Source of the DNA: Bugula neritina
Lineage: Eukaryota > Animalia > Bryozoa
Assembly: GCA_964035545.1 (NCBI GenBank)
Contig: OZ037765.1
Coordinates: forward strand, 1,178,001 to 1,242,000
DNA: 64,000 nt
Direction: 5' to 3'
Shown here: positions 8,701 to 51,296 of the stretch, piece after piece
How the letters are laid out: each line of letters starts with the position of its first letter
Numbering within the stretch: position 1 is the stretch's first letter
The notes under the pieces: generated by a model
The model's input: only the letters and a program-made list of their open reading frames with translations
The model's database searches: none
What the model was told of the DNA's origin: nothing
Translations under genes and position numbers: made by a program

Positions 8701-10036
8701 GATAGCACTTATCTGCTTCCTGTTTACTCTTTCTAGTCACAGATAACAGCGAGTCAAACATCCTGCAATAGACTGGGGCTCTTTCAGACTCCGGAAGGGG
8801 ACGCATCTCAAGGGTCCCGAGTCTAAACTTCAACATTTAGAATAAAAATTAAAGTTTTGTCAACAAACATTAAAACTAGTTATTATCAAATGTATTGTCC
8901 CAGTGCTCTTGTTTATATAAATTCCACTATTTCAAAACATAACAAATTAAACATTTGTCTGATACACTGAGAGATATACCACAGCAGTATGTTTAGTGTG
9001 GTGAGGATGTATTGATATACAAAGATCAAGTAGAACGTATCATTACTAAATACCGGAATTTACAAATCAACAAAATAATTTGAAATACTAAAACTAGTTT
9101 GGTGAAGTTTAAACCAAAAGGTTTCGAAACAGCATTTCATAATTTCAAACTGCATTTAAAAAGTTATTGAAACTCAATAAACATTTTAATATGTTTTGCC
9201 GAATTTATTTTCTCAAGCCTTGCAAGCTTATTTAAAAATTAAACAATTTTTCATTGTTGATCTGTTAGCCTACTAGATACAAATATACCCATATCATGGT
9301 GACTCATATCATGATGACTCATATCATGATGACTCACAGTCTTATTATCATTCGGTAGATACTCGCTCCAGAAAAAACAGTCCTTGCCTTTAGAACTCGC
9401 TGTCAATGTGTACTTCAATATTTTACTATCGTCTGCTTTCTGAAGGTTGAACGCCATTTTAAACAAATCTAAAAACTCTTGAGGAGAATATGAAGAGCCG
9501 ACGGCCATATCTGTCAGGAGATCTTCACTGACTGAAAGCAAACAGCAGTTTCTGGGTGTCTTAATGTGTAAAATTTGCAAATGAAAAATCTAAATATCTC
9601 AGCAAGCTAAAAAGTTCGATATTTAAATAATATCTAGCTTTTTTAGTACTCAATTTTTAGAACAGTTACTCGAAAGACCAAACCTGTCATTTGTGAAAAA
9701 GCAAAAATAATAAAATTACAAACAGATATGACTAGACTAAACTAGACTCCACTACAAAAACATATGCTATAAAATAGATTGCTAAATTTTTAAATTATAT
9801 AGACAAGCTTGAAGAATTCTTTAGTAGAAAAATGTTGCGAAATTGATAGTTGAGATGACAACTAGCCAAACAAAGCTCTTAACATATTCCATATTCTCAC
9901 CTTCTGCATCGTATACTGTGACTCCATCAGTAAGAATTAGACTCCAGCCTGATTTGCTTTCCAACTCAACACCTTTAATCGAGAAATATAAACTCCGGCC
10001 ATCTTCTAGTTCAATCTTTGAACAACATTCTTCCAT
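5742..10036 (-). CDS. XRCC4: DNA repair protein XRCC4 (non-homologous end joining)
   Basis: Exons ~10036-9901, 9531-9338, 8827-8657, 7672-7616, 7512-7458, then ~7327-7066, ~6750-6700, ~6358-6115, 5865-5742. Head-domain motifs WSLILTDG and FRLG, stalk motif LYTNFVAVLNEKKRKIREL, and a disordered basic/acidic tail. The 3' exon boundaries are less certain. Confidence 0.88.
7699..8650. repeat. 18/21-bp minisatellite (ACT)ACTACTAGCTGTATATTY filling an XRCC4 intron
   Basis: Runs almost from the donor to the acceptor. Confidence 0.97.
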
Positions 10037-25000: not shown

Positions 25001-28000
25001 TATTATAGTATGTTGTATTGTATTATATTATTAAAGTATGTTATATTGAATTATATTGTTATAGTATGTTATATTGAATTATATTATTATAGTATGTTAT
25101 TTTGTATTATACTATTATAGTAAGTTGTATTGAATTACATTATTATAGTATGTTATATTGAATTACATTATTATAGTATGTTGTATTGCATTGTATTATT
25201 ATAGTATGTTGTATTGAATTATATTATTATAGTATGTTATATTGAATTATATTTTTATAGTATGTTATATTGAATTATATTATTATAGTATGTTATATTG
25301 AATTATATTATTATAATATTTTGTATTGAATTATTTTATTATGAGGCATCATGTTATTAAATTATATTTAAATACAGTATATTATGGTACATTACAAGAC
25401 ACCATACTATATAGCATTGTATTGTACTCATATTAAATTGAGATAATTCAAAACTTAGGGTTGTTTTTAACTTCAGTTTTCACTATCAGATTTGAACATC
25501 AAACCTCAAACAGAAAACTTCTTAGAACTCAAACCACAATGCTGGAACAAGCAAGCATTGTGGTTGAAACTGAATTCCACCCAGATGATCTCTAAGCACT
25601 TTTAGTCTACTGGAAAAAAGTGAGAAATGGAAAAAGTGGAGACACTCACCTCACGCTGCTGTTCTGAGAGTCTGCCACAGTTTCTCTGACACAAACCAAT
25701 AGCTTTGAGTAGAAGGCCATCAATTTGCTGACAGAGGAGCGAGATATCTACAGGATATAACATCAGAGAGTGATATCACAGGATATGACATCACAGAATG
25801 ACATGGTAGGATATGACATCACAGAGTGACACAGCAAGTTGTGGCAACACAGAGTGACATCACAGTATATGACATCAGAGAGTGACATGGCGGGATATGA
25901 CATCACAGAGAGACATGGCAGGATATGACATCACAGAAGATAAAACAAGAAAACATGACTCACTGCTAGTGTGTTTTGAGGCTCTTTTATCTGTAATCTG
26001 CTCCATAAATAAGTCAATCTTTTCTTTGAAAGTCTACAGAAAGTATAAAGTTAGAAATTAAAGAAATAAACAAACAAAAATAAGTTGATAAATCAATTAA
26101 ATTTTTAAATCATAGAACCTGAGAAAATAGCTTATATTTTAGTAAAAAACTATTCAAGCCTAACAATTCAGATCTTATAAATTTCACTCCGACAAACACT
26201 TTTGGTCTACTTAGCACGAGATCTAACAAATCTACTTAGCACAAGATCTAACAACTCTACTTAGCACGAGAGTCAACAACTCTACTTAGCACAAGATCTA
26301 ACAACTGGTAGGGGGAACAAAGAGACGTCACCTTCAACATCATATCAAAAGCCTCCTGCACTTTGCCCATTTTCTCCAGAAGGAATGCCATGGAGTCATA
26401 TTGGTGATACTTTTTACAAATCTGAATGTGATAAAATAACCAATGCATAAATTACCTGTTTATTGTAAATTACTCTATGAGAAAATTATCAGGTGAAATA
26501 TGTACATTACTTGTACTAGTAGGTTGAATACTGTATGTTAACAATCAACATAGTAAAGAAGTAGCACTATATTAGTTGTTGTCACTTTCCTAACACCTAC
26601 TTAGTATATGGTATACTGTAAACAAGCATAACACATGACACATGACATGACATGACACATGACAGGGCACATGCCATGACACGTGACATGACATGATACG
26701 TGACATGACATGACACTTGACATGACACATGCCATGACAGGGCACATGACAGGGCAGGTGACAGGGCACGTGACAAGCACCTGGTAGACAGTCTCGTCTG
26801 CATATCCGTGACTCGTTTTCAAGTACATCTCCACCAATGAGCTGTCATATTTGCACATCAACTCGACGTAGATATCGTAGAGCTCAGTGTCGAACATGAT
26901 GGTGTCCCTCGCCTCCCTCTCCGTCACAAGAGCTTGCAACAGCTGGTACTGCGTGCGACCTTCACCTTCCAGTGAGTTGACAACTTGCAGCAGGTTCACT
27001 CTCAGTACGTCAACCAATAGCCTCGCAGTTCTCACTGAGTCACACTCTGTTAGAGGCTAGAGAAACAGATATCACTGGGAGAATAACTCCAATAATATGA
27101 TTGAAGTGAAAATTTCAACCAAATGAGAGCATCACTAGAAAAACTTCAAATAACAAAGGATAAAGCAGACTGCATTAAAACATTAAAACTCCAGTTTACA
27201 GCTATTTTATGGAAAGCTAGATTATTTTCAAAAATAGTACAAAGTAAAGAAAACAAACATATAAAGAGTATATCAGAATCACTACAAGTTTGAGAGTTAT
27301 AAAATCAGAATTTTCCATATTTATGCCAGTTTGTTACTTCTAGCACATTCTATGACCAGGAGACAAACTTTAGTACCTTCAGGTGTGCGAGAGTGACATC
27401 TACGATCTTCTGATGAATAGTGTTAATAAGCTGATCAGTTAGAGTGAGTTCTATGAAGGAGAATGCCTGGTGACAGCGGGTGGGGTCATTGAGATAGGTG
27501 AGTAGGATTTTGTCATGGAGGCCGTATTTCTTGAATATAAACTCACACACCCTGAACCTGTATTACATAGTATACAGTATATAGTATTATATAGTACTTA
27601 GTACACAGTATATAGTATGCAGTGTATACAAGATATAGTAAATAGTATACAGTACATAGTATACAGTATTACACTAAAAGGAAGAAATGAACTCACAGGT
27701 TGGCGTGCTCAGCCATAGCCAATATCTTATCAACATTTATCTGCAGCTCCTTTTCTACAGTTAGCAGTTCAAGGAGAGCTTCCTGTCTCTCTTCCTTGTG
27801 GGAGTCGTCTCCCGGCTTACACAGGAACTCCACAACCTGCAAGGGAAAACCTCTCAGTCACAGCAGAAGGACGTGAGTTTGTGACAGCAGAAAGATGTAA
27901 GTTTGTGACAGCAGAAAGACATGAGTTTGTGACAGGAAGTTGAGCTCACTTCCTGTTTTAGCCGATTCAAATATTTTGCAAAAAATTTTCAGCTTATAAG

Positions 28001-31000
28001 ATAATAAATAGTATTCAATATGCATGTCACTATCTAAATATTCTTACAGCATTTAAAATAATATTAGAAAAATTAAAAATATGTTTTTAAATTCATTAAT
28101 TAACAATATTTAAAATTTTACTATTACTAACTATTACTAACCATTGTTAACTATTACTATTACTAACTATTACTAAATATTACTAACTATTGCTAACTAC
28201 TACTAACTATTACTATCCATTGTTAACTATTACAAGTACTGACAGGCACTGAACCCACCTGCTCAAACAGTCTCTTATTCAGACGTATGGAGCTGTTGTG
28301 TCTAGCCAGTTGTCTAGCGAGGAACGTATACAGCATTCCAGTCTGCTTGGGGGTGTACCCAGTCTCGTCCACCATTATCTGTAGTAATATATCCACCACT
28401 TTCTGCCTCAGGTGTTTCCTGTGTGATACAACAGTTGCTGAAAGCTCTAACAATGTTGAAGATATGCTCTGATCAGTAACCAGTATTTTGTGAGCCTACT
28501 CACTTATCAGAAGAACCAAATTCATCCTCCTCGAAAGCTAACGCCATCACATTCAGGAACTCTCGTGTGTCAAAGTCCAGAAAAGTTCTCATGTACGGAT
28601 ACGGCTTTTCAGCTGCAATTCAATAAGTTGATAATTTAAGTAAAAAGTGAATAATTATATACGAAAAGTTTCATCTATTAAATCATTTACAACAGTTGCA
28701 TGTCTCTGGCTAACAATACAGCTTTACACAGCACTAATGAATAAAACCAGTTAAAGTTTATAACAGCACTGTACTACATGATGCACACACATTCTTTGTA
28801 TAAAACATATACACCTACCATGTGATGCCTCAGTCTTTCAAAGTCACACTTTCATCAAAAATAATTTTCAAATTATAAAAACTAATTAATGTTATATAAA
28901 AGCTTTTCAAAGTTCAAAATAACTAACATGGATTGGCCGAATTAGAGTGAAGAGAAGTCAGAGTAGTAAACATGGCCGCCTTGACGTCTGCAGCTGTTTC
29001 GACGTCCAATGAGCCGATGGGATAGGCTAAGCCAGCCAATGAGTTGCTGATATACACAAGTAGCTTGTTGCCCAGCTTCACGTGCGTGTCTAAAGAAAAC
29101 AACAAAATACATTAGAAACAGTAGCTGGTGAACTAGATGACTAGCATAGACTCAGTACCAGATGACTAGCATAGACTCAGTACCTGATGACTAGTATAGA
29201 CTCAGTACCAGATGACTAGCATAGACTCAGTACCAGATGACTAGCATAGACTCAGTACCAGGTGACTAGTATAGATTGAGTACCTGATGACTAGCATAGA
29301 CTCAGTACCAGGTGACTAGCATAGACTCAGTACCAGATGACTAGTATAGACTCAGTACCTGATGACTAGCATAGACTCAGTACCAGATGACTAGCATAGA
29401 CCGAGTACCAGATGACTAGCATAGACTGAGTACCTGAGAGCTGTTTGCCGGAGTTGATGGCGTCTCGCAGCACTTGCGTGAGGTCCAGCAAAGGTGTGAT
29501 ATAGTCCTGCATGCCCTGATTACTGATGTATATGATGGCATCGTACATTCCATTCTCCCAGCATAGCTTCACCGTCTGCAAAATACTAGCCAATAAACAG
29601 TTTGCTTACAAGTTATTATCAGTGAGATCAGCCAATCACACGCCACACACAACACAAACCAGCCAATGACAACCGACCTCGTGTATGTCTAAGCTGATGA
29701 TGTTGAGATGTACTATACAAGCTTCCACTCTGCTCAGCATGTCCTTCCCCTGGAAGTGACTCGTCAAGTCCTTTATTATCTCCGGGGAAACAGCCTTGAG
29801 CTGGTCGTCGAGGATAAACGGCTCTAGACACTCGAGGAAAGCCCCGTGAGCGATAACATCTTGTCTAAACCTCTCGTACAGCCGTCCAAACAACACGTCA
29901 CTGGGAACAAGCAGCAGCCAATCAACAGTGAGATTTCATACAGAGTGACAAAATTAACTTGATTCAGGGTTCAAGTAGATATAGTTGGCTGTTGGGTTTC
30001 TACTATTTATCTTTCAGAAAAAAATATTCTTAAGAGATTGCAATTAATTTGTATGTAACAAAGTTCTGAAACACTAGGGTTCAGATAAGTTATTTAATTT
30101 TAATTCTATTTATTCACACCATAAACCATATTGTAAAGCTTTAGTTCTACTTATTTTCATTTCTAAATTGTCTTTATACTCACATTCTGTTGAGTCTGAG
30201 ACAATACTCCACACAAATAGGGACCACATTCTACAAGAGTGAAACCCCAGGCTACATTCTTACAGCTATAACTTTATAAACATGCATGGATCCCACAGCT
30301 ATGAAAAGCTAAATATTGAAAACCAAATTTAATTAAATTGAATTTAAAGATTCATAACAGACTAAATTTTAAATTTAGAAGAATAAAAAATCATTTTGTC
30401 TACAACCTACAGATAATCATGTCTCACTAGTAAAAATAATAGTTAAAAACACAAATATTTCAATATTCATTGAAAAAAACAATGGAAGCAGTTTAATATT
30501 CATTAAAAAATAAATAAAATAAAAATAATGAAAGTATTTTAAGACACATAAAATAGTATATAGTGCGTTACCTCGTAGTGGTTTATGAGTTCATCAATTC
30601 TACCGAATACTGGACACAGTTTAGTCATAGATAAGTCCACGTAAATATACAGGATGTCCAACAGCTAGAGAATACAAAGATTAGATACAAACTACTAACA
30701 ACTTTTCATTTATCATATAGGAAATAACAAACACCTGGATGGTAACTGCTTGCCTATTAGATCAAAGGATAGTTACTGAAAACATGGCTGCATAACAAAT
30801 AAACAGGTTGACATCACGAAAAGTAACAATCACTGCAGTCAATACAGTCTTAGTGATTGCACTGGCAGGTTTTAGTGAATATCTGTCGGATTATTTTTAT
30901 TTTCTAGTAAATTTTATTGCAGTCCATTTTGTTAGAATGAATCATGCTCAGCTATTTGAGCCAATCACAGTCAAGTATTTCACTGCTGCTGTTTAGACTA

Positions 31001-34000: not shown

Positions 34001-37000
34001 AATGTGATATTTGACTTTTATCACCAGTCCTGCAGAAACTCAGAAGGGAGAGTGACAACTCACTTGAACTCCATGTCAAACACCGACCCGCCACTGTCCG
34101 CGCACACGGCCACCTTGCGATTGTCCGTAAACTTGACGTGAAGGACGGCCTGCCCCATGGGGTGGACGTCTGTGATGGTACGCAGCAGTTTGCCGGTGTC
34201 AAGGTCCCACATGGTGATCTGCCCCTTGGCGTACCCGGCGAGCAGACGGTTGCAGTCGACATTGAACGCCAGGCAGGAAACAGAGCCATATTGGACACCG
34301 GTGTTTGTCGTGCCTAGACTCCACTTCATGGCTTGTGATGGGTCTAAGCAGGTGAATTATACTGTATACTATGCTATACATTATACTATACCGTACTATA
34401 CTATATACTATATACTATACATCATACTATATACTATAGCTTATACTAAGCTATATCATATACTTTGCTATACATTATACTATATGCTATAGCTTATACT
34501 ATGCTATTCTTTATACTAAGCTATTCTTTATACTAAGCTATAACCTATACTATACATTATACTATATACTATAGCTTATACTATACTATAACCTATACTA
34601 TGCTATAGCTTATACTATGCTATACTTTATACTATGCTATACAGCCTCAATGGTGTAAGCAATAAGAGGAGCTACTTACCAAAAATATAGACAATTCCGT
34701 GAGCAGTGCCGATAGCTATGAGTACATCAACGACCATGGCGGTGGGAGACCCGGCATTTATCCTAGTCTGTCAACACACACATACAATATACCTTATACA
34801 ATACAATACAATATTAGTACATAACCCTATACTACAGTGTAGTATTTATACTACACTAAGGCACACTGTACTATGTTTTACCAAAGAATTTCATACTAAA
34901 TAAACAGCCATACAAATCTCAGGACTGCCAGAATATAGATATATTATGACTCATGTCATATTTACAGTGAGTAAGTGATTCCCTTTTTCTGAACATAGCA
35001 TAAAATTTTGTTAAATAAAAGTAAATATAAAAATAAAGTATAAATAAACTAGTAATACTATTTTAAACAACATATAGCAGTATATATTATATTATATTTT
35101 TATACATTTCACATTGTGGTATATTCTAGAGATTATTAGATTATTACATTTCATTACAATATATCAGTTTATCACACTTTCTGTCATATCAGTACATTAA
35201 AAGACTCTTCTCCCTAAAGCTTGAGCCTAAATAAAAATAAAATTCTAAATCCAAGATTTAAAGATTGATATGCTGAATTATAATTACAAACACAATCTGA
35301 ATAAACAAAGTCAACGACATAGTCCATTATATTCATGTGATTTTATCAACAACAAACAAAAGCCCTGCTACTTGAGTAAAAAGTTTACTGAACAGCCATG
35401 TTAGGGGTGGGTGAACCCCCCCCCAACCCTGTGTATAGACAAACCTGGGCAGAGATTATCTGGGAAGAGATCCCTTTCAGTACTGTGTGTTTCAGCACAG
35501 AGCCATGCCCTTCGTACACTCTCCTCTTCCTGTGTACAGAGTAAATATAACACAGTCGGAGATTGGAATTGAGTTAGTTGAAGTGTGACAACACAGCAAT
35601 ACACAACCAATAGTCAATGTACTTGTTAGTACAGTTGAAGATAAACTCTTAATGATCGACTAAACACGGTTATAAAACACAACTAAATACACTTTTCCTT
35701 CTCTGTACATAATTCATAAAATACTCTCAACAGCTAAAAGTCTTATTTTCAATTGTTTATTACTAAGAAACACAAAATAAATAAACAGTAATTTTAGTTT
35801 CTAAACAACTTTGCACACACTAGTGCTAGAAAAATTATGTAACTAAATTTAGAATTTTATTTCACAATTAGCAGAGTTTCTCTTCCTTGTTAAGTGAGCA
35901 TTAGCCTAACTTGAAAACTAAATCTATAAGTTTACCTGCGTCTGTCTGGGTCATCAAAACTGACTAGCGACTCGGTGTCAAAGGTCCCGAGCAGACGACC
36001 AAACTCGTTATCTTCCGAGTTGGACACGACATCGTCATCCTCGTGAGCCGTCTAAATGTGAACAACTCAGAGTAAATTCTTACACATCTCAGTTTATTCT
36101 AACTTAATAAATACAAAGGTAGTCTTCCAGTGATGTAAAGACAAGCATGCCTTACCTCATTTAGTATACTTTCTAATGTAGGAGCAGACACATTGGGAAG
36201 GTCATACTCTGCTTCATCAAGCTATAAACAGAATATGATTATGTAACAAAACAAAATACAATGTAAATAATTCATTACAAAATTATAAATAATTATTCCA
36301 TGCCACTGATAGCATTGAATGATTAATACTTATGACTATAGTATAGGCAAAAAGTTAAAATCCTCCAAAATATAACAGTTGCTACGTCTAATTACTAAAT
36401 CATGATTATCACCTGCACTTTTTACACTTATACTATAGACTTAATGCACCATATCTGTTTTCCATTTATTAACTACTACTTTTGTTACTACAGTCATGGT
36501 TTGAATAGAAAAAAAAGTAACTAAAACTAACCCCTACGACTTTTAGTACTACTACTAGTAGTATTCCGCTATCACTATGCTTCCACCAATTATTAATTTT
36601 GTGACAGACAAAATCATTTGAATTTTTACTTTGCTACTTAGACTTACGACTAGTCCTAGTACTTACACTTAGCCTTACTCTTAGTACGTTTTAAATTTAT
36701 TGCATTTAGTTTTACTGAGTCGTAAGCCTATAGTTACATTATTGCTTTTCTTTTTGCTAGTAGACGTAATATTAATATAAATAGCAGCTGTAGAAAAGCT
36801 AGCACTAGTAGCTATAATGATGATCAGTCTGAAATACTAATAGTTAATTTCGTAGTCATAGTGGTAGTGGAACCCAAAGTCAAAGTAAATCCAGAAGTTG
36901 ATTTTGAAAACCTCCAACTCGGATTACATAGGCACTAGTTAATGAATTTTTGATGTTACACACTCGAATTTCGTTGTTATTTCAAACATATATTTTATTA

Positions 37001-37571: not shown

Positions 37572-40500
37572 TCACGTGTCCGAGTAGCCATCGTCATCAT
37601 CTGCCATACCGCCATCCCGACCATCCTGGAAAGAGTTATTAGTCAATACTGAGAACCAACTGCTATACAATTGAGACTTTAAATAAAATTAAAAAGAAAT
37701 TCTTTTCTATAATAAATAGGCCACCACAAATGATAAAATCTAAATTGATTAAAAATTTAGAGCTGAAAATCAGAGTTTTAATAAGCTATTTTTACTGAAA
37801 ATATAATAAATAGTAATATATATACAATTTATTACACTAAAATAAAGAGAAGACAAATCTTACAGGATCATCAGGTTCAAGATCCTCTCCATACTGAATG
37901 GCAAGATCAATCTGCAGAAGGACATCCGTTATAGAGTCCTCATCTGATTGGTCAAGAGGGAAAAACTTGACCAATCCGTAGTTATCTATCTAAAACATGT
38001 CAGTAAACTAGTGCGTGATATTCCATTTACTTGTTCACTTCACTTGGTTAAATAAACAATACGTATCCAAAATGAGAGACTATGAGTCCGAAAACAGTAC
38101 AACAAATCAAATAATTCTCTAACAGCCTAAGCATGCATGCATTAGATCTAATAAGAGTGAAATACAAGCACCTTACAGACATATCAGATATATACATTAC
38201 TATGAAAAAGTGACAGCAGGAGCAAATAGTGTTTACTGTTATAATAACAAACAGGAATTAGCGGTTGCCGTGGTAACAGAAGAGTGAGTCGTACTAACCA
38301 TAGAGGCAATACAAGCATTTAGTTTTGAGAACTTGGAGCTGCCTGGCATCTTTTCATTGGCTAGCAACACCTGAAGGTCGGGATCCAAGTACCTGTAATA
38401 GGGTGACAAGTACCTGTAGCATGGTGACAAGTACCTGTAGTATGATACGTATAAAGCAGGTAACATAGGTATAAAGCAGACTCACTCGTCTAGACGTCTG
38501 CGAGCTGATTTGCTGAGTATATCCAGTTTAGTCATGACGTTGACGTGAGAAATCTCTAGAGTGACCATCGCCGAGAGAGCGGAGAGCAAACCCGACACGT
38601 ACTTTGACGGCTCCACCATAAACTGCGAGTCTATGATGAAGACGCCACAAATTCGAAAGTCTCTGTTTTGCAGGTGATCTACTAACTGTCTCATCACCGG
38701 GATGTGAGTGTACAACTCAATCTGCCCTGCAGCGGGGAGAAACAGGAGTTGTGTACTCTATGTGATAGTATATAGGAGTTGTGTACTCTATGTGATAGTA
38801 TATAGGAGTTGTGTACTCTATGTGATAGTATATAGGAGTTGTGTACTCTATGTGATAGTATATAGGAGTTGTGTACTCTATGTGATAGTATATAGGAGTT
38901 GTGTACTCTATGTGATAGTATATAGGAGTTGTGTACTCTATGTGATAGTATACAGGAGTTGTGTACTCTATGTGATAGTATACAGGAGTTGTGTACTCTA
39001 TGTGATAGTATACAGGAGTTGTGTACTCTATGTGATAGTATACAGGAGTTGTGTACTCTATGTGATAGTATACAGGAGTTGTGTACTCTATGTGATAGTA
39101 TACAGGAGTTGTGTACTCTATGTGATAGTATACAGGAGTCGTGTACTCTATGTGATAGTATATAGGAGTTGTGTACTCTATGTGATAGTATACAAGAGTT
39201 GTGTACTCTATGCCACAGTGAAGGAAACGGCAAATTTGTGCAGTTTTGTTGCAGTATAACCGGAGTTATCGGCTCTCTACAACTCTACTACATGCTATAC
39301 TACATGCTATACTAAAAGCTATATTACATGCTATACTACAGCTATACTACATGCTATACTGCATGCTATACTACATGCTATACTACATGCTATATTACAT
39401 GCTATACTACATGCTATACTACATACTATACTACATGCTATACTATATGCTATACTACATGCTATACTACATGCTATACTACATGCTATACTACATGCTA
39501 TACTACATACTATACTACATGCTATACTATATACTATACTACATGCTATACTAGATGCTATACTATTGCTAGAGCTTCAGCTGTAACAAGTGCGTAGTTG
39601 TCTCACCCGGACAGTCGAACACGAAGTAGTCGTCATCAACATCATCCAGCTGTTCATCCAACCAATCAAAGTTCTGTGCAAAGTATCTTCAAACATTTGA
39701 TTCACATTAAAATTATCCGATTTAAACCGAATCTTTCTAGGAAATTATAGAGTATATCAACAGTATGTTGGGGCAAGCAAATCTCTTCTTCAATTTGATT
39801 ATAGAAAGAAATTTAAGTCATTCTGATATCTTGAAACAAAAAACTCAAATAAAAAGTATCTCTGAAGTCTAGAGCAGTGCACGCAGAGTACACAAGTAGT
39901 ACTTGACATTGCTCACAGAGTAGACAAGTAGTATTTGACAATGCTCACACAGTACACAAGTAGAACTTACTCCATGCAAAAGACAAGTCCTCCATTTGGA
40001 CCGTATCGCAAATCTTCATCCTCCATGACATCATCAACACAAATGAGCTCTCTCACATCTGTTTCAAATAGTCACATCTACATACTTACTCTAACACAAT
40101 AACTGTGCTGATGATTGTAATTTAAATGACAGCAAAAGTAGTAATTATTTCTTTAATCAAATTTTTGCAAGCTACTAAATGAAACATTAACTTCCAATTT
40201 ATCACTAGATATAAATTTCACTCATCAACAATAACTCTATCAGCTCTCAGCCTTTACAATTACATGAAACCAGTCTCCCGCCATAGACTGTGAACTTACA
40301 CAGTCCAGGTCTATGTTGGGAGCTATGTACTCACCCCCATAAACATCGTAATCAAACGCTTCTGCCGCAGGGTCTAAGTTGAATACTTTAGCTGTTCGTC
40401 GAGAGGCCTGGCAGTGCTTTTGAATTGTACTGCAGTAGGTGGACTAGAAATCAAGTAGGTATTTTTTATTGATAGATTGTTGACACATGGAAAGCCTAAA

Positions 40501-41596
40501 TTTTATGCTTAGCACAATTTGAAGACAGGTTGACCTGTTGTAATTAATTAGGAAAAACAATGCAAATTTGATCTAATTACTTACGTAAAACATGTACATA
40601 TCAAAGCGATACATTTTTATTAAATGAAACAATATAGTAAGAAAATTCAAATTTAATTTTGCAAATGACTTTGGATTAATGAGCACAACCATTACATTAT
40701 TTGGCATGACTTCCTATTTAGGAAACAAAGGCAACCATCTGGTATTATATATCAAATTGTATTACCTTTATGAATAGCAATAGCTGGAATAGCAATAATT
40801 TATAATAACATTAATAATATTTGTAGGCTTGAGGAACTATAACTAAAATTAATATTAAACATCACTTTAATTTTAGTTTATGGCCTAAAAAAATTGTTTA
40901 CTTTTAGTTTGGACATAAGAGAAAAACCAAATTATTTTATAATCATATAATCATTATTGTCGGCATACTGCAACTAGGAATTAGCAGAAACTATAATATT
41001 AAGTTGATTTAATATATAAGTCAGTATAACTATAAGTATAAGTGATATCGAAGCTGTAACAATAACTCCATACACGATATACACACTTACAGTAACAGCC
41101 AATATCATAAAAGTGAATCATAATGGTAAACTGGTATTCTTAATTATAATAGTAATAATCATAATGAGATCAAATAACCTATCACAATCTCAATGACAGT
41201 ACCCGGTACGAACTACATGAGACGCATCAGCATGTTTACTACCATTATCCTTATCTCAATCATTATCATTATGTTTATATCACAATGATAATCATAATCA
41301 TAATGATAATGTCTGATTAATAATGATAATGTATGAAATATGAATATAATATTAATTACTAATTAATTATAAGTAAAAGAAAATTTGAATAACCATTAGT
41401 TAATTACAATTACATTAAAATTAATATGATCAATAAATATTATTAAACATGGAAATAAAAGTTGAAGATCAAGTTGAAGATTAACTTTAACTTTAAGTTC
41501 AAGATGAAGATCAAGATGAAGATCAAGATGTGAATTTTAAAACGTCACCTTTCCACTGCCTGCTGGTCCCATGACAAGTTGAGCATATTTTGGCAT
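37572..41596 (-). CDS. GPN3: GPN-loop GTPase 3
   Basis: [78 protein letters not shown]. Exons ~41596-41549, 40443-40336, 40057-39971, 39686-39607, 38726-38486, 38392-38299, 37989-37864, 37626-37572. Confidence 0.95.
38742..39212. repeat. 30-bp minisatellite TAYAGGAGTTGTGTACTCTATGTGATAGTA (GPN3 intron)
   Basis: About 15.5 near-identical head-to-tail copies, no spacers. Confidence 0.97.
39287..39565. repeat. 12-bp minisatellite TACATGCTATAC (GPN3 intron)
   Basis: More than 20 copies. Confidence 0.95.
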
Positions 41597-42137
41597 TTTG
41601 ACAAAAAAAACAGAATTTTCTAAAGATAAAGTTCTATAGTAGGTTGAGCAGCAAAATTATCTCTCCTTTCAAGTTGTTCTAATTAAATTAAAATCATAAC
41701 TAAATCACTAATAAAATATAAGAACCACACAAAATTGTGCATGCATTAAAATATGATCACTGAGAGATATAACGAGTGCAAATGTAACCGCTAGAAATAT
41801 ACATAAAGTAATCATAGAATAATTATGGATGCGCGATTGTCGATTTCTATGAGTTCTAGACCCAAATCATCAGAAACTAATCAGTCACAGACCGGCTGAC
41901 AAAATTATCACACCGTACGACACTAAGATAGATTTTACGCTAATTTAAATAAGGAACTCCTTTTAGCCAATATTCGCGAAGAGAATCTCTACCAGGAGAG
42001 TGCCGACACTTGATTGATATTTACTAAATTTAAATTACCTACCATTTAATTCATCATTGTGATATTTAATGGTTGAAGATTATAGCAGCTTATATTGATA
42101 TTTGTTAAACTACCATATAAAAGGCAATAGTATCAAC
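41597..42137. promoter_or_regulatory. Bidirectional promoter GPN3/ARPC3
   Basis: About 540 bp separates the divergent ATGs. CCAAT at ~41967; locally CpG-enriched. Confidence 0.6.
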
Positions 42138-45100
42138 ATGCCAGTAAGTTCACTCCAACTTCCAAGTTGATTTTAATTTACAATTTCAATTTGAATTTGA
42201 ATTACTATTACTAGTGTTGTGGTGGGTTTTACTGATTTTGAGTATCGTAAACTCACCGAGTAATATATATAATGTGGCCTTGGGGTGAGCTCGGGGTCGG
42301 TGTGCAGTTGCGGGTTAATAGCTTGGCTGCGAGGTAACTCCAGCTCCTGTCCGTCTGGTAGGGGTGAAGTTGAGACTCCGGGTTAGAGTAGTTGGCTGGT
42401 GGTGCTCCTCGGTCTATGGTCCTGAGCTAGCACTCACAAACGTACTCTAACACATTCTAATTAGGTAGCATACATTCTATATAACTATTCTCAATTATTC
42501 CTCAATCAGTCTCAAGTCTCCCCATTCTCCCATTTTCACTAGGTTATATAGCTATCACACTCACACAAGCCACACCCACACTATAAGTAATATTAATGTC
42601 AAACTTAGAGTTGTGCACCCCACACACATGCAACAGCAAGAGATGACAACTACACATATTTATGATACTTATAAATCCAGATATAACATTCTCCGTCACA
42701 ATAAAAATTTACAGTTCCACCTGTAAATACTTGACTAGGGGCATTGCGATTTAAGGATAAATATTGCAGTAACAAGGTTAAACTATTAAATATGTAATTA
42801 CTTTAGGATTACTGGACATATTAGAACTTGCAATATATTAGACATTGGGTATAATTGATATTAATAGACGTATTGGAAATTACTACATACATAGTAACCT
42901 TTATATAATAGCTGTGAGTGTCTACTAGCCTCACAACTGTTTAATAGGGCTGTGAGATTTACTACTACTATTGACCAAGTTATAGAATAGGTAACATACG
43001 AGAAAACAGCACAGCAAGAATAAGTTCAACTTCTGTCTATTGAAAGTTGCAAATTTCCTTTTGTTACCTTTTATAAAATAGAGCCTATCAGATAAAATGC
43101 TATAGATGCATGTATGCTATATATGTATGTATATGTATATGTATATGTATATATATATATATATTTTTTTTTTTTAATCACCTTGTGGATCACTTTATGT
43201 TCTATTGGAAGAAATTAGTATATTAAATATTAGTCTGTACTATACCTACACTGTTACTATACCTACACTGTTACTATACCTACACTTGAAAAAATTAAAA
43301 ACGTTTATCCAGTAAATATAACCATAATATGTTAGTGCACGTAGCATGTAGCATGCAAGATCTGAACGATGAAACTTGAACAAGCCAAGACCTAGGTAGA
43401 AAGTAGCTTCATCAGTCAGCGTTTATTTATTTTTTTGCAGTGATTGCATCAATTTCTATTTTTTTTTTTTAAACTAAATGAGTTAGCACGACTTAAATCT
43501 GAATTTTATAGTTAACTAAGCATTATAAATTAAATCTTAAAATTAAAAATTATGCAGGGTATTTGTAAATGAGTTGTGGCTGTGTAGCCCTATCTTCAAA
43601 GAAAGTATCAATTACTATTTTTCTAGATTATGAGATATTATGAGACATATGCAATTTAATTATAAGCTTACTTCCACATTAAATATAATAACCTTTTAAT
43701 CTGACAGATGTTGCCAGACCAATTATTTTGATTAATGACTTATCTAATTCTAAGTAGCCCCTCTTATTAGTATAAAATCGGCAAGGATTAGCATAATTAG
43801 TATAATTTATTCTATATACCATCTTTGTAACTATAGTGGAAAAACTGTAGTCTGCAATGTTATACACACAGTAATAGCAATGGCCTTGTATTATATTCTG
43901 TTTATGTAGCACTAAACTCATATCAGCGGTTACTCTAATCTGTGGGACTTGAACTAAGGAATTATAATTAATTACTCCTGACTTTTGATATTAGCTGTGG
44001 TGACTTACATTTATAAGCTTGTATTCAATGGTAATTGCAACTATATACATATCAAGCACATTATATGACGTGGGAAAAGGCTATAGCGGAGATTGGAGTA
44101 TGGTGGTACCAGTCTATACCAATGTAATATGTGATTAAGGATTAGAGGTCTACGTAGATAAGTGTATTTACTGGGGCTAGTATATTTCTTTATAAGGATA
44201 AGGCTAACATAATTAATATAATATGATGACTGCATGAGCCTGCTGCAAACTAAGATGTATATAAATATGAAGAGAATGGCGATTGATCTAGGCAAGAGGC
44301 AGTTAGCCTGTGTATCTTTACCACAATAATATAAATGTCTACAAAGTAAAATCCAGGACCCAAAAGAGAATGGAAACACCTTCATCACACAGAGTTGTGT
44401 AATATAATATCTCAAGCAATAATTTCAAGCTGTCTTGCTGGGTAAGGCTTACAGCTCATTAAAGTTTATGTTTGGTCTACTATTTCCTAAACTGTCTAGT
44501 TTGATTCACTTAGAGCCAGCTATCAGGTTAATTAACAAAACTACTTCCCCTTAGATTATCACCAATTGCTTCCAACCTTCAGAACTCAACTATGTCAACA
44601 TTTTCCTAGAGAATAAAAATTAACCTCTGATTACTGCTCCAGCAGCAAGATGATATCAATTAATAAACACAATGAACCTGTAGATTCACAAGACTATGGT
44701 TGTCATACATATTGAACTTTTCCAGTTCATTGATAATACACATCAGTTAGAGAGTAATAGTGGTATGGTGCAGTAGTCACAGACGATGACTGACTACCAG
44801 CTTGAGTTTGTCAAGGTATATAGGCCTGCGTGGTTGGTAATGAGCTTAATAGATGATTACTTCAAGAGAAAATCTTATAAGGCGATAAGACGTATTATAT
44901 ATTAATTCGATTAGTAGTTTGACTAAATAGTATTGCACTTAGGTATAAGAAGTTTTAATTAAAGTTAACTAGGGCCATAATCTGAACAATACATGGGAGT
45001 GAATGAGACTGCACGGGTGGCAGCTAACACGCCCCATGCGCTGCAGTAACATGTAGCAATGTCAGCCCCCACCGTGCTTGTCTCCACATGTATCCTACTA

Positions 45101-48100
45101 ATAAAAGAGCTTATATTCTATTTTCCTTTTGAAGAAGTAATTGCAAACAACATTGATCCCTGGTAACTCTTATATGAGTTTGGTACACATAACTACAGTA
45201 TAATATTTTATAGCTAGTTTTATTTATGTTTTCAAATAAGTGGATTACTGGATTACTGTCGCGTCATAGCCTACTAAATGAAGTCATATACTGTCGTACG
45301 TGAGGCGCCAGCACAAGTTGTGCTTAAATGTGCGTCGTGGCCAGGCAGCAGCAGCGCTTTATTAATAGAAAATTCACAACATAAAATTATATACATATAC
45401 CCATCACCAACATATAGAAAGTGGTTAGTATTAATTAGCTAGCATGCAGGATAGCAAAATGCATCAGAGTAATGTGCACTCAGTCTATTTCATACGTCTA
45501 TGAAATTTAGTCTAGTCAATGTCAAAGTATAGAGCTCTATGGACGTCCAGTAGTAATTTTTGTTTTATGTAAGGCCTGTAAATTTGTTGTATTTCCGTAC
45601 GGATTTATGCATGCTGTCGGTATACCATTATGAAATTTTATATATTCGATCTGTGTCGGCGTCCCATTTTCTGTAGTGATTCTACGTACGTGTTGCCCTA
45701 CTGACGTGTCGTCATGGCGATATAAATTATACAATTGTTTTTTGATTCGTTTGTTGTTCGGGACAGTTTGTGTTTGAAAGCGCTTTATATAAATATCGTA
45801 TGTAGCCTATTTGTTGAAGTAGCCTATATATTATGACAGTATACTGTGTAGCCCTAATTTTTCGATTGAAGTTTAACGTCATTCTGGACGAGCCCTGTAA
45901 TTCCATAAAATTGTTAGTATATGTGCACATACATTGAATGATGGCCTGCAAGCGTCCAACAGCTCGATAGGCTGGGACTACGGAGTAAATAGTATATCGA
46001 GTTGGGCATTAGTGGCCTGCACATGTCCAACAGCCGGATGGGCTGGGACTACGGAGGAAATAGTATATCAAGTTGGGCATTAATGGCCTGTACATGTCCA
46101 ACAGCCGGATGGGCTGGGACTGTGAGAAACTAATATGGAGATTTATAGAAACTCTTAGGCTGGCTACATAATGGGCTAGTAATTTAATTATATAAATACC
46201 TATCTAGATCTAGGTACTGAGGGCTTGTATTTGGGCTAGGATATTGTTATTGTTCAGACTGCCAGGGGGGAGAGGGTCAAGTCTGACAATAGCTTTTGAG
46301 AAGTATCTCAAAAGCTTGTTGGCCAACCTATAAATGTATTTGGTGTGTGAGCCGAATTTTGGCTTACTCAACTTAGGAAAAATTATTTTGTAATTTCCAA
46401 GTAATAGCACACCGTTATGCCCTTGGGTTTGACATTTAACCCTGCCACTTGAGTAGATGTCTTTACCCAGTTTAAAGATAAAAGTGACACCAAAATAAAT
46501 GCTTGTGATGGTGTACACCAGGTGTTGTAGAGTAGAGAAAAGCATGTATACAAGAAGATATATGGCTGCTGTCACAGGGTGATTGCACACATTAAATACC
46601 TTATCAGAGGCTTTTGAGCTTGAGTGAAGGTTGGTTGTGGCAGTCATCACATCCTGATGAAAGCTTGCAGCTATCTTCTCTTCTGGTGAGACTTTGATAG
46701 TAGGTCGGACTTGCTCTCCAGTAGCTGAACATGGCGGTGCCGAGGAACAGCTGGGGTTCATACCTTCTGCCTCAGTGGTACCGTCTGAGGTTGCAGGTAT
46801 CTTTGTTGCTGGGTTGCAGTGCTGGGTGCTTCCGGCAGGTTGTGAGGTGGAGAATCTGGACTCGGGGGTCCGGATGTTTGATTCTTCATCTGCCGGTCTG
46901 CACTCTGGACCTACTTTAGTAATAATACTGGCGCAGATATGGCATTTGGTAGGTTTCCTACTCGGACTGTCCACACTGTGCTTGTAGCAGAGTGTGAACA
47001 ACTCCTCTATGGTTGGTGGATTTTTAAACCTACCTGCCAGTTGTGGCAGCAAAATGTAACTTAGCTCACGGTTACCTACGCCAGTAGCAAAAGTCTCACC
47101 TATAATTGTAAGTTTTGAGCCACTATCTAGCATATATAGATTATTGCCCTCATTGATAACTCTACATAAAAAGTCTTCTGTAGACTCATGGGCCCTAATA
47201 TGGAGGTCTAGGAACTTTTCCATCTTTGTAGAGTGGTTCTTATTAAACTTTTTGTCAAGAACATTAATCAGGGTGTCAAATGAGATTTGGAAATTTGTAG
47301 ACCTTACAATGTTCTGATAACTTTGTTTTGCATTACCATAGAGACAAAGGCCTAGGAATTTAACACTTTGCTCATCTGTGAGGTTGAGAACTTTTGCTCG
47401 ATAGCTAAAATCAGCTTTGGTTCGATACCAATTGTCAGAAATATCACCAAATTGATGAACAAAAGCCCAACTTTTGGGGCATCTAAATAAGTGGCACCAG
47501 TCACTACATGTGGCCATTGTGTGACAGAAAATGATATATAGGCTATTTATATATGAAATTTGTATGAAATTTGTTTATGTAAACCTATGTATAGTTAATC
47601 ATTTTTGCTTGCACAATAAATGATATAATATTTCCACCCCATATTTAAAACAGACACGTCCTCGTGTCAATTTGTGCACAAATCAACAGTAAGATAAAAA
47701 CAAGCCACATGAAAAAAAACAAATTGGAAAAAACTAACTGTACGGGACTTCTATGGCAGTCTCAACTAATAAAACACACAGATAGACTGAGAAACTGGAG
47801 CGGTGCACGAGATCGAATGGCACCTCCACCAAATGTTGTGGTGGGTTTTACTGATTTTGAGTATCGTAAACTCACCGAGTAATATATATAATGTGGCCTT
47901 GGGGTGAGCTCGGGGTCGGTGTGCAGTTGCGGGTTAATAGCTTGGCTGCGAGGTAACTCCAGCTCCTGTCCGTCTGGTAGGGGTGAAGTTGAGACTCCGG
48001 GTTAGAGTAGTTGGCTGGTGGTGCTCCTCGGTCTATGGTCCTGAGCTAGCACTCACAAACGTACTCTAACACATTCTAATTAGGTAGCATACATTCTATA

Positions 48101-50619
48101 TAACTATTCTCAATTATTCCTCAATCAGTCTCAAGTCTCCCCATTCTCCCATTTTCACTAGGTTATATAGCTATCACACTCACACAAGCCACACCCACAC
48201 TATAAGTAATATTAATGTCAAACTTAGAGTTGTGCACCCCACACACATGCAACAGCAAGAGATGACAACTACACATATTTATGATACTTATAAATCCAGA
48301 TATAACACTAGTACTATTACTTTACTGGTAGTATTAGTATTACATTTACTGTTGTCTGTTGCATTAGTACTTATTATTAGATATTATTAGTAACTAATAA
48401 ATAATGTAAACAATGGTAGCAGACTAGCAGTATTACTAGTAGTTAGTTGTAAGACAGAATTTACGGTTGTTAGGCTATCAACATCATAGTCATAGTGATA
48501 CTGATACTGAAACTCGTACTCTTGTCATACTCGTACTAATATGATGCGCTCTGACTCTATCACTCACGCTGTTTCATTACAGTAGCTCTAAATGGAAGTG
48601 ACTCTTAAGTAGACGTGGCGTAGAATGTTTGTTACTTCAATGTTTATTACTCGAAAGTTTAAGACAAAGCAGTGTTAGAATTAGAATGTCAAGCATTTTT
48701 ACACTTTATTTTGATTTGTGTGACTTCAGATGCTACTGTGCATAAAGTTTGACTGCTTAGCCTACGAATTTTGAGCTATGTAGGGCTAAAGTGATACTTT
48801 CATTTATTGTTGAACAAATTTATTTGATGAATATTTCAGGCGTATCATTCCCAATTTGTCGAGCCACCAAGGTTGGTTGGAAACATGGCATTAGCCCCTC
48901 TTCGAACTCAATTTAACGGACCAGCACCTAAAGATCCTTGTTAGTAGTTAAGCCTTAATTGCATTTATTAAGCAGCATATTGTGTTGTATGCACAACTCA
49001 GACTGCATTACTTGTTTCTTTTGTATAACTTCTCTTTTATTCAGCTTAAAAACAGTAAATTTTTGCTTATTAAATATTCATAGCATATTACAGGTTTATG
49101 TAAGAGCATTTAACGTTTTATTTCCTTAAAATGTGGGCTATAGAATTCACAAAAACAAAAGTTATACTATAGATAGGTAAGAGTATTGTATAAATGCACA
49201 TGATACATCACTCATCAATAACACATGATTTATCCATTTGTTGTCATTCTGTATCTCCAAACATATTCTTGCAATTTATCTTATAGCACTACAATATGAT
49301 GCCATAGACGAAGCTCTGTATTTCTTCAAAGCCAATATTTTCTTCAAAAACTACGAAATTAAAGTGAGTATCACTTGTACAATGGCTTGTCAGATGACAT
49401 CAACAACTATAACATTATTCACATTATTTTATTTGAATAATAAAGTCGCGAACTGTTTTGCTTTTGTTCATAAAATAAACTTAAGTGTATGATGTTTCTT
49501 TGTTAGAATGAGGCTGACAGGACTCTGATATACATAACTCTCTACATCTCCGAGTGCTTGAAAAAGTTACAAAAGGTAAGCCTCTCTCATTACCTGCTAT
49601 TTGTTTGTTTCTGTTTGTATATGTTTGTTCTGTTGGATTTGTTGTTAATCTTTTAATAAAAAGCAATAAAATTAACTGCAGTTTTTAGATACTTCATTCA
49701 GCAAATTATCAGCAATGAATAAGTAGAATAAAAGATAACATGCAGCAAAACTATATGTTTATAGTTTTAGGTTTTTCTGTTTTTTCTGCAGTTTGTTATG
49801 TCTATGTATTATATTTATGTATTGTATTTTATTATGTTTATTCTTACATTATATTATATTTCGTTATATTGTATTTGATGTGTAAAATTTTATTCTGCTG
49901 TATTGTATGATCTACTTTATTGTATTGCATTGTTATTGCATTATATGATCACATTATTTTGTATTTTATTATGTAATTATGCTTTATTATATTATGCAAT
50001 TGCTACACTCTATTGTGTAACATAATTATATTATATTATATAATTGTATTATATTATAATAACAGTGCAGCAGCAAGAACCAAGGTCTCAAGGAGATGCA
50101 CACTCTGGCCGTTAGCCAATGGCCCTTGCCTGGTGACGCGGGCTTTCCCTTGAACGCGATGTACCTGGCACCTTCAGATAGAAATGTGGAAGGTTAGCTC
50201 CGGCAGAACTGAAATACTTTCATTAGTTTGTCATATTTTTAGTTTTGATTTTAGTTTTCAGTCCTTCATATACTTTACAAATAGTCTGCTTTCATTATCT
50301 CTTTGAAAATGCTCTGAAGCTGAATTTATTAGGAGTTTTCTGTCCTCTGTGATTAAGCGGTTTACCTTACAGATACCATGAGGAAGTTCATGCAGCAGTT
50401 GAGACAGGAAATTGGTGTCAGAGTGTGTGAGAAAGTGTTTGATCCAGCTACTGACAAGCCAAGCAAGGTAAGTGGATTTAATACCCTGTATTATATGTTT
50501 ACAGTGGTGGATTGTATTATATATTTACAGTGGTGGATTGTGTTGTATATTTACAGTGGTGGATGTGCTTTGTTAGAAGGAAGTTCATGGACAAGAGCTT
50601 ATCTGCCCGTGGAATGTAA
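42138..50619 (+). CDS. ARPC3: Actin-related protein 2/3 complex subunit 3 (p21-ARC); intron 1 carries the LTR element
   Basis: Exon 1 ATG CCA (42138-42143) then GTAAGT; exons 48840-48939, 49287-49363, 49507-49575, 50065-50191, 50373-50467, 50557-50619. Protein MPAYHSQF...[10 protein letters not shown]...[43 protein letters not shown]...[19 protein letters not shown]. Confidence 0.96.
42215..42688 (-). repeat. 3' LTR of the retroelement
   Basis: Copy of 47834-48307. On the minus strand it is preceded only by a weak purine tract (GACGGAGAA). Confidence 0.95.
45941..46120. repeat. 71-bp tandem repeat (2.5 copies) downstream of gag
   Basis: Units start at 45941, 46012 and 46083 (RTGGCCTG...GTCCAACAGC...GCTGGGAC). 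Confidence 0.9.
46210..47517 (-). CDS. gag: Gag-like capsid protein (435 aa) with degenerate zinc knuckle, S/T/P-rich linker and hydrophobic C-terminal segment
   Basis: Intronless ORF starting ~300 nt after the PBS. The pattern W..F...A.....D....FL...L.G.A...Y, F..L...L...F, F......E....F, F..G.....L...L, PT..E fits Ty3/gypsy capsid. CHIC at ~aa 192; hydrophobic stretch at ~aa 315-348. Confidence 0.8.
   Translation of the reverse strand: MATCSDWCHLFRCPKSWAFVHQFGDISDNWYRTKADFSYRAKVLNLTDEQSVKFLGLCLYGNAKQSYQNIVRSTNFQISFDTLINVLDKKFNKNHSTKMEKFLDLHIRAHESTEDFLCRVINEGNNLYMLDSGSKLTIIGETFATGVGNRELSYILLPQLAGRFKNPPTIEELFTLCYKHSVDSPSRKPTKCHICASIITKVGPECRPADEESNIRTPESRFSTSQPAGSTQHCNPATKIPATSDGTTEAEGMNPSCSSAPPCSATGEQVRPTIKVSPEEKIAASFHQDVMTATTNLHSSSKASDKVFNVCNHPVTAAIYLLVYMLFSTLQHLVYTITSIYFGVTFIFKLGKDIYSSGRVKCQTQGHNGVLLLGNYKIIFPKLSKPKFGSHTKYIYRLANKLLRYFSKAIVRLDPLPPGSLNNNNILAQIQALST
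47819..47831 (-). promoter_or_regulatory. Primer-binding site complementary to the tRNA-Ala 3' end
   Basis: Minus strand TGGTGGAGGTGCC starts 2 nt after the LTR. Its complement GGCACCTCCACCA matches the acceptor end of eukaryotic cytosolic tRNA-Ala as I recall it. Confidence 0.85.
47834..48307 (-). repeat. 5' LTR of the retroelement
   Basis: 474 bp, TG...CA, followed on the minus strand by the PBS. TATA-like CTATATAA lies on the minus strand near 48162-48171. Confidence 0.95.
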
Positions 50620-51296
50620 TCACCCATTTCCTCTCCACTTCTCATAACAAATAAAACTCCCGGATACGTGACTTATTAACCTGTCTAACATGTGGTTATG
50701 GCTCGTAATGTAAACTCCCTGCAGGTTACTGGATGTCAGCCTTTTCCAAACGTAGCTTTTCCAATTAAACTAAATATTTAATACAAACTTCAAACTTAGC
50801 TTGTAATTTATATACATTTTATTTCCTGTCATGATCAATAACGAAATAAATAATTTTCACAGAAAAATAACATATTTTACTGTAATATTTAGTTATAAAA
50901 ATTACAAAAGCATATGACACCAACAGTCTCTGGATTGCAGCCTATGAAAGCTGATACTTATTATGCAGCTCGACCTAATCATAAATTAATATCAAAATTA
51001 TAAATTAATAGAGCTAGTGACTATTATGCGTGGTGAGACAACAACGTCCTGAACTAGAGCTAGTAACTAGTAACACATAGCACCTGTATGATAACACGTA
51101 GTCCTTTTGAGTTGACAATACCAATACATGATTTATAGAAAGCCTCTTAGTTGAACAGCTGCTGAAATAGTATAGTTTCTAGTTCTGGAATATAAAACCA
51201 TAGTATTTGCTGAAATATCAAGTAGGTTAAGTAATATAGCCTCTGGTCCAAGAAAGGCACTGATTGTGTTCACAGTGATTGGAGGTAGAGCAAGAA

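Follow-up and report, generated by a model that had tools for sequence, protein, structure and literature searches.

A 64,000-nucleotide stretch of the genome of the bryozoan Bugula neritina (assembly GCA_964035545.1, contig OZ037765.1, positions 1,178,001 to 1,242,000 of the forward strand; hereafter the window) was analysed with regard to a mobile element that lies between the genes for a GPN-loop GTPase and ARPC3. The element extends from 42215 to 48307, is read on the minus strand and consists of two long terminal repeats (LTRs) that enclose a gag open reading frame (ORF) and an interior in which no pol domain was detected. We consider it, with a probability of roughly three in four, to belong to a non-autonomous family of gag-only LTR retrotransposons in the Bugula neritina complex and to be a young member of it. 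It had been picked out from the sequence in an initial annotation, the claims of which are taken up below where the results bear on them.

Architecture and age of the element

The structural features of an LTR retrotransposon were all found: direct LTRs, TG..CA ends, a target-site duplication, a primer-binding site (PBS) adjoining the 5' LTR and a polypurine tract (PPT) adjoining the 3' LTR. The LTRs were located using a repeat finder followed by base-by-base extension, which gave an exact direct repeat of 474 bp with TG...CA ends and 0 mismatches (42215-42688 and 47834-48307); the identity that the initial annotation had judged by eye thus holds at 474/474 positions. The tetranucleotide CTAG stands directly outside both outer ends (42211-42214 on the left and 48308-48311 on the right), as had been reported. 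The fifth base is mismatched, which excludes a 5-bp duplication. The reading of the element was corrected to the minus strand, on which 47834-48307 is the 5' LTR and 42215-42688 the 3' LTR. Read in this direction, the LTR starts with TGTTATA and ends with ACAACA, and a TATA-like TATATAA lies about 150 nt from the start of the 5' LTR. Neither the LTR start nor the primer-site string has any further occurrence in the window, with 0 expected by chance for each.

The 5' LTR is followed by a TT spacer (47832-47833, minus strand) and a 13-nt PBS, TGGTGGAGGTGCC (47819-47831, minus strand), of the type complementary to a tRNA 3' end. The site itself was confirmed as intact. Its attribution to tRNA-Ala, also made in the initial annotation, is presumptive, being taken from the general ...CUCCACCA 3' end of tRNA-Ala; ARAGORN detected no tRNA genes, either in the window or in the related loci, and Rfam gave no match in the window. 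The 5' leader from the PBS to the gag ATG (47518-47818) is 84% identical to that of the related contig L002 over the overlap. It is succeeded on the same strand by the gag ORF of 435 amino acids plus stop codon (46210-47517) and by the non-coding interior (42711-46209), in which the ORF list and a Pfam scan revealed no ORF longer than 127 amino acids and no pol domain. The PPT, GACGGAGAA, occupies 42689-42697 and abuts the 3' LTR, with a T-rich block upstream that extends the feature to 42710. Both the PBS and the PPT are kept in a distant relative, the marine metagenome contig L008 described below.

Several repeats were observed within the interior. Microsatellites lie at 43097-43164 and a 17-bp repeat at 43238-43286, and a 71-bp tandem repeat (45941-46121; 2.5 copies, 90% matches) stands directly past the gag stop codon. 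Repeats related to the 71-bp unit occupy the same position in L002, L004, L005 and L016, and they are one possible cause of short-read contigs of the family ending there. The segment 42738-43474 (about 740 bp beside the 3' LTR, including a TATGTA microsatellite and the 17-bp repeat) has no counterpart in L016; this may reflect either a gain in the lineage of the window copy or a loss in L016.

The age of the insertion was estimated from the LTRs. As the two LTRs differ at none of their 474 bp, their divergence has a 95% upper bound of 0.0063, or no more than 2.5% of the synonymous distance that separates the element from the nearest other lineage. The bound corresponds to roughly 0.3-3 million years at assumed rates of 1e-8 to 1e-9 substitutions per site per year, which are not bryozoan-specific. 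As far as can be read from the sequence, the integration looks recent, for the LTRs are identical and the duplication, the PBS and the PPT are all intact.

The gag open reading frame

The ORF at 46210-47517 was confirmed as the single open frame that the initial annotation had described, since it is the sole ORF of more than 127 amino acids in the element and the next longest stop-free piece reaches 127 amino acids. The probability of a 435-codon open frame arising by chance is about 1e-11 at the base composition of the ORF itself. No gag family was matched by Pfam. A word-indexed protein search returned one cluster (91% identity), and an exhaustive search of 1.84 billion representative proteins returned ten relatives, five of which are full-length (348-459 amino acids) and align to residues 1-200 of the window Gag at 30-36% identity. 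None of the ten carries a Pfam domain above threshold and none is a Gag-Pol fusion.

The alignment of these proteins revealed a conserved core (DNWYQTK, L.G.AK..Y, F..LI..LD..F and ES...F..RV), in which the ES..F..RV motif near residues 110-125 is a form of the major homology region (MHR) of retroelement capsids. The capsid domain extends over about residues 1-185 and is followed by a conserved CxxC (193-196), an S/T/P-rich linker (200-300), a hydrophobic helix (about 314-346) and a basic tail, with 12% K+R and 2% D+E in residues 300-435. A similar hydrophobic helix is present in most relatives (among them P0001, P0008, P0010 and P0011), with Kyte-Doolittle means over 19 residues of 1.5-2.1 in most of them. 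A hydrophobic helix followed by a basic tail, as in the window copy, is unusual for a Gag and is under selection there (ratio of nonsynonymous to synonymous divergence, dN/dS, 0.18). In some distant relatives the C-terminus is formed instead by an acidic motif, DEGYCSE, which is conserved among them.

A model of Gag calculated from the single sequence with AlphaFold was unusable (predicted local distance difference test score, pLDDT, of 38). A second AlphaFold model was calculated for residues 1-200 with an 11-sequence alignment as input; it was all-helical, with a pLDDT of 70 overall and above 90 for residues 40-90. A Foldseek search of the PDB with this model gave a top tier made up exclusively of retroelement capsids (PNMA2, dArc1, the capsid proteins of the immunodeficiency viruses HIV-1/SIV and FIV, and Arc). 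The best match was PNMA2 (8rb3; E 6.8e-4, template-modelling score TM of about 0.5). The Foldseek viral library returned mainly retroviral Gag and caulimovirid coat proteins with weaker scores, and a profile search of the PDB sequences with the Gag alignment returned nothing meaningful. A two-lobed retroelement capsid fold for the N-terminal half of the ORF is well supported by the model but not proven. The 'capsid pattern' noted in the initial annotation was not recognizable to Pfam, and it is through the structure model that the capsid fold emerged. The tripeptide DSG at residues 132-134 might suggest a protease motif but was discounted, since relatives do not conserve it and it lies inside a predicted capsid helix; IIG follows only a few residues on.

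Selection was assessed by comparing the window gag with that of L002, which gave a dS of 0.25 and a dN of 0.045 and hence the dN/dS of 0.18 quoted above. By region, residues 1-200 gave a ratio of 0.10, the linker one of 0.58 and residues 300-435 one of 0.18, and the excess of synonymous changes was significant (p = 6e-16). No indel was found in the 1308 nt of gag at 8% divergence, whereas the leader and the interior beside gag show 84-86% identity in aligned columns and many indels. The regional ratios and the indel-free gag beside indel-rich flanks imply that the whole ORF, including its C-terminal part, is kept by selection. The gag ORF is thus under purifying selection, which fits an element that needs its own capsid.

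These results bear on the possibility that the element is a passenger resembling the large retrotransposon derivatives (LARDs), its own Gag being unneeded for its spread, its movement depending on helper proteins and its ORF having not yet decayed. Many non-autonomous LTR elements, LARDs and the miniature terminal-repeat retrotransposons (TRIMs) among them, need cis signals alone, and a helper Gag-Pol must enter the particle in any case. An unneeded ORF would, however, not show a dN/dS of 0.18 and zero indels at 8% divergence while the adjoining interior gathers indels freely, nor would gag lengths of about 350-460 amino acids be kept across lineages less than 50% identical. We therefore consider a passenger of this kind improbable.

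Relatives, the search for pol and the insertion site

At least five other copies were found in Bugula-associated metagenomes; they are 76-97% identical to one another and have a common layout. In four contigs from independent samples (L001-L004) the 435-amino-acid ORF is intact, with no indel and 91.5-91.9% nucleotide identity to the window copy. The gag of L005, L016 and L009/L011 is interrupted by stops and frameshifts. One of the Bugula-associated metagenome contigs, L016 (4.3 kb), follows the order of the window element without a break in collinearity: the match begins shortly ahead of gag, runs across the interior and the PPT and takes in the first 107 bp of the 3' LTR, at 72-90% identity. 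The L016 interior of about 2.5 kb is devoid of pol and matches that of the window element at 82-89% identity in aligned columns with many indels, and three stops and several frameshifts interrupt the L016 gag. L009/L010/L011 represent an older broken copy (76% identity), and L005 and L017 are further distinct copies, both counted among the broken ones.

The layout was also found at much greater distance. L008 is a 5.5-kb marine metagenome contig with a Gag about 30% identical to that of the window. Its 5' LTR starts with TGTTATA and ends with ACAACA and is followed by the same TT spacer and by the PBS TGGTGGAGGCGCCGG, one base off the window PBS. Downstream lie a 424-amino-acid gag, 2467 bp without an ORF longer than 60 amino acids, a TTTTTATTG...purine block that, as in the window copy, abuts the 3' LTR, and the 3' LTR start. 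In L006 and L007 (Gag identity 30-34%) stops are present in all three frames directly past gag, and related LTR-end/PBS strings are present upstream of it. Since the layout is common to L016, L008, L006 and L007, it must predate the divergence of lineages in which nothing but the capsid core is still held in common. The gag-only state is, on this comparison of sequences, that of an old and diversified family, one layout recurring in its relatives whether they are close, at middle distance or very distant.

Two further observations concern the L008 contig. A 68-bp tandem array of about seven copies (111-838) lies just upstream of its 5' LTR, and its 3' LTR matches its 5' LTR over 59 bp only, which suggests that the contig joins two different copies.

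The region 42689-46209 was searched for pol on both strands. Among 36 stop-free pieces of at least 35 amino acids, Pfam matched no protease, reverse transcriptase, RNase H or integrase family at E values up to 1. A tblastn comparison of the element with a Ty3/gypsy-type RNase H fragment from a Bugula contig (L009) gave no match, and a translated comparison of the interior with that of L008 revealed no similarity. The pol-less layout of the other copies and relatives counts for more here than these negative scans. The initial annotation had described these approximately 3.5 kb as lacking pol and had allowed that degraded pol homology across them would speak against its proposal; the description was borne out and no such homology was found.

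A partner that could supply pol was likewise sought. None was found in the window, and none with a related capsid was found among the 1.84 billion proteins; the latter is weak evidence because bryozoan transposons are almost absent from the protein library. An exact scan of Joint Genome Institute (JGI) metagenomes for the LTR end, spacer and PBS returned four contigs, all of them chance matches. They were rejected as helper candidates, the matches lying inside unrelated coding sequence near ketopantoate reductase, permease and glycosyltransferase genes with no tRNA. L009 carries, beyond its degraded copy, a Ty3/gypsy-type RT_RNaseH fragment (14378-14830, plus strand; E 6e-25) and, facing the other way, a Retrotrans_gag fragment (15266-15583, minus strand). 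The possibility that these fragments belong to a pol-bearing copy was weighed and discarded, as they lie on different strands and have no similarity to the element; they are remains of other elements.

For the host genes, exons were matched singly as stop-free pieces. In the 64 kb such pieces match Vps8, ARPC3, an RGS domain, SH2, RING fingers, a GPN-loop GTPase and FAHD1, and the DNA is animal but not human. For the exon of FAHD1 (4668-5150), the protein named 'FAHD1 [Bugula neritina]' matches at 98% identity and the next named relative, from another bryozoan, at 75%, which makes the host Bugula neritina or a closely related sibling species. The GPN-loop GTPase gene is on the minus strand; its first coding exon (match 41540-41656) starts near 41596, and more exons lie near 40000 and at 38485-38757. 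ARPC3 is on the plus strand (48840-50644), with its first recognizable coding exon from 48840 and further exon matches at 49229-49489 and 50357-50644. The two genes are head-to-head, and their first coding exons were about 1.15 kb apart before the insertion. This spacing places the element in the promoter region that the two genes share, although, as the ARPC3 start codon was not located, it may instead lie within the first ARPC3 intron.

Minisatellite arrays are unusually abundant in the window, with periods of 12, 14, 21, 25, 28 and 30 bp (1-480, 7575-8740, 17758-18219, 23951-25400, 25733-25956, 29072-29471, 34361-34627 and 38622-39604). The array near 24-25 kb has a GC content of 0.23 and a GC skew of +0.33. 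Three program-listed ORFs (7607-8263, 17779-18243 and 38694-39259) were discarded, being merely minisatellite arrays with no Pfam match.

Origin, mechanism and relation to known elements

The capsid fold, the dN/dS of 0.18 and the copies with a common layout support the satellite-like, capsid-only element proposed in the initial annotation. Two other origins were weighed. One is a domesticated host capsid gene, like Arc/PNMA, situated between old LTRs and selected for a host function. It would account for the low dN/dS and for the ORF being intact in four independent samples, and PNMA2 and dArc1, which match best in structure, are domesticated capsids in their own right. Against it stand the identical LTRs, intact duplication, PBS and PPT of a recent integration, the several broken copies in other sequence contexts (L009, L016, L005 and L017) and the insertion in the promoter gap of two housekeeping genes rather than in a conserved gene slot. 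Nor does gag form a single fixed locus without LTRs or cis signals, as a domesticated gag gene would, and we regard this origin as very unlikely. The other, a one-off recent internal-deletion derivative of an autonomous LTR retrotransposon, that is, a dead copy with LTRs still identical by chance, would fit a non-coding interior with simple repeats as in decayed sequence, but it has hardly any probability left given the same layout and a collinear interior in L016 (about 10-20% diverged), the gag-only layout in the L008 lineage at about 30% Gag identity, the purifying selection on gag and the lack of a detectable pol remnant by Pfam on the stop-free pieces or by tblastn. A single deletion derivative was also the outcome named in the initial annotation as contrary to its proposal; at least five other copies, and L008, have the same layout.

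Several points nevertheless weigh against a young, mobile, gag-only element. No helper was found, nor any Gag-Pol with a related capsid in the 1.84 billion proteins. The capsid call depends on a shallow 11-sequence alignment and a medium-confidence model with a TM of about 0.5 and no PDB sequence match. The LTR identity could also stem from gene conversion or assembly polishing, and the window samples 64 kb of the host genome, the closest other copy being about 9% diverged. Activity of the element is something we infer from its identical LTRs and intact ORF only.

If the element is a gag-only retrotransposon, its cycle could be as follows. The 5' LTR would drive a genome-length RNA, which would be translated into the 435-amino-acid Gag, and Gag would assemble particles around the element's own RNA, its basic C-terminal tail and CxxC possibly taking the place of the zinc-knuckle nucleocapsid that it lacks. 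An autonomous element in the same cell would supply protease, reverse transcriptase/RNase H and integrase in trans. A tRNA-Ala and the PPT would prime the two DNA strands, and the helper integrase would recognize the TGTTAT..ACAACA ends and make the 4-bp duplication, so that the copy would have landed in the gap of about 1.15 kb between the two head-to-head host genes. The weakest link in this scheme is the need to co-assemble with a Gag-Pol of foreign origin, as the searches found no related capsid joined to pol. A more far-reaching interpretation, which we put forward tentatively, is that of an ancient and diversified bryozoan clade of capsid-only LTR 'satellite' retroelements that has no surviving autonomous relative and has persisted for a long evolutionary span as an obligate hyperparasite of the Pol of an unrelated helper, a counterpart among retrotransposons of the satellite viruses that encode a coat protein. 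The Gag of such a clade would, equally tentatively, be characterized by a capsid domain, CxxC, a hydrophobic helix and a basic tail without a zinc knuckle.

The superfamily cannot be read from the element because it has no pol. The TG..CA ends, the capsid fold and a duplication of 4 bp occur alike in Ty3/gypsy, BEL/Pao and retroviruses. In sequence tests for a Ty3/gypsy-type Gag, no PF03732 (Retrotrans_gag) match and no CCHC zinc knuckle were found, only the CxxC. An hhalign comparison of Gag with the PF03732-type Bugula fragment gave an E value of 0.017 and a probability of 3%, with the alignment in register. An assignment of the element to Ty3/gypsy is unproven.

With PNMA2, dArc1 and retroviral capsid proteins the present Gag shares a predicted two-lobed all-helical capsid fold and the MHR-like ES..F..RV. 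The identity is only 11-19%, with no sequence-level match, and the C-terminal half of Gag (linker, hydrophobic helix and basic tail) has no counterpart in these proteins. They are, moreover, host genes or parts of autonomous viruses, whereas the present Gag is found in a mobile element with identical LTRs. Satellite viruses, such as satellite tobacco necrosis virus, encode their own coat protein and use the polymerase of a helper. By analogy, the element may be likened to them in having its own capsid and borrowing its replication enzymes; satellite viruses, however, neither belong to the retroelements nor insert themselves into a genome, and for the present element no helper was found.

The element has the features of the gag-only class: a kept gag ORF with a modelled capsid fold, no pol domains found and a multi-copy family. 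Terminal-repeat retrotransposons with a GAG domain (TR-GAGs) occur in the plants Coffea, Arabidopsis, Triticaceae and sugar beet and are termed 'semi-autonomous' (definition as quoted in PMC13570524). The likeness comprises LTRs, PBS, PPT, a kept gag ORF, no enzymatic domains and presumed helper dependence. The element differs from them in its length of 6.1 kb, which is above the size originally proposed for TR-GAGs, in its animal (bryozoan) host and in a Gag without a Pfam gag family, a zinc knuckle or a detectable autonomous relative. It differs also in that its gag-only state is common to lineages of about 30% Gag identity and is thus old rather than that of a recent derivative. TRIMs and LARDs resemble it as non-autonomous LTR elements mobilized in trans, and invertebrate cases exist in the protein-less TRIMs of an ant (PbTRIM; PMC3532108) and of bivalves (PMC6934838); they encode no protein, whereas the present element keeps a selected capsid gene. 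Literature searches for gag-only non-autonomous LTR elements in animals found none, within the literature and terms covered, the animal elements described there being the protein-less TRIMs. The TR-GAG strategy is known; what sets the present element apart is the animal host, the Gag without a recognized family or zinc knuckle and the ancient gag-only state.

Gag-only non-autonomous LTR elements have been documented almost entirely in plants, usually as recent offshoots of known autonomous families. The present element is an animal case with a capsid gene under clear selection, and its capsid-only layout is common to lineages so diverged that only the capsid core aligns. As Pfam is blind to the ORF, the family is likely to escape standard transposon annotation or to be given a wrong label there. 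The insertion in the shared promoter gap of two housekeeping genes makes this copy a candidate polymorphic and functionally relevant insertion. If a helper were identified, the element would provide a system for testing by what means a parasite with only a capsid brings a foreign Gag-Pol into its particles and how RNA is packaged by a Gag without a zinc knuckle.

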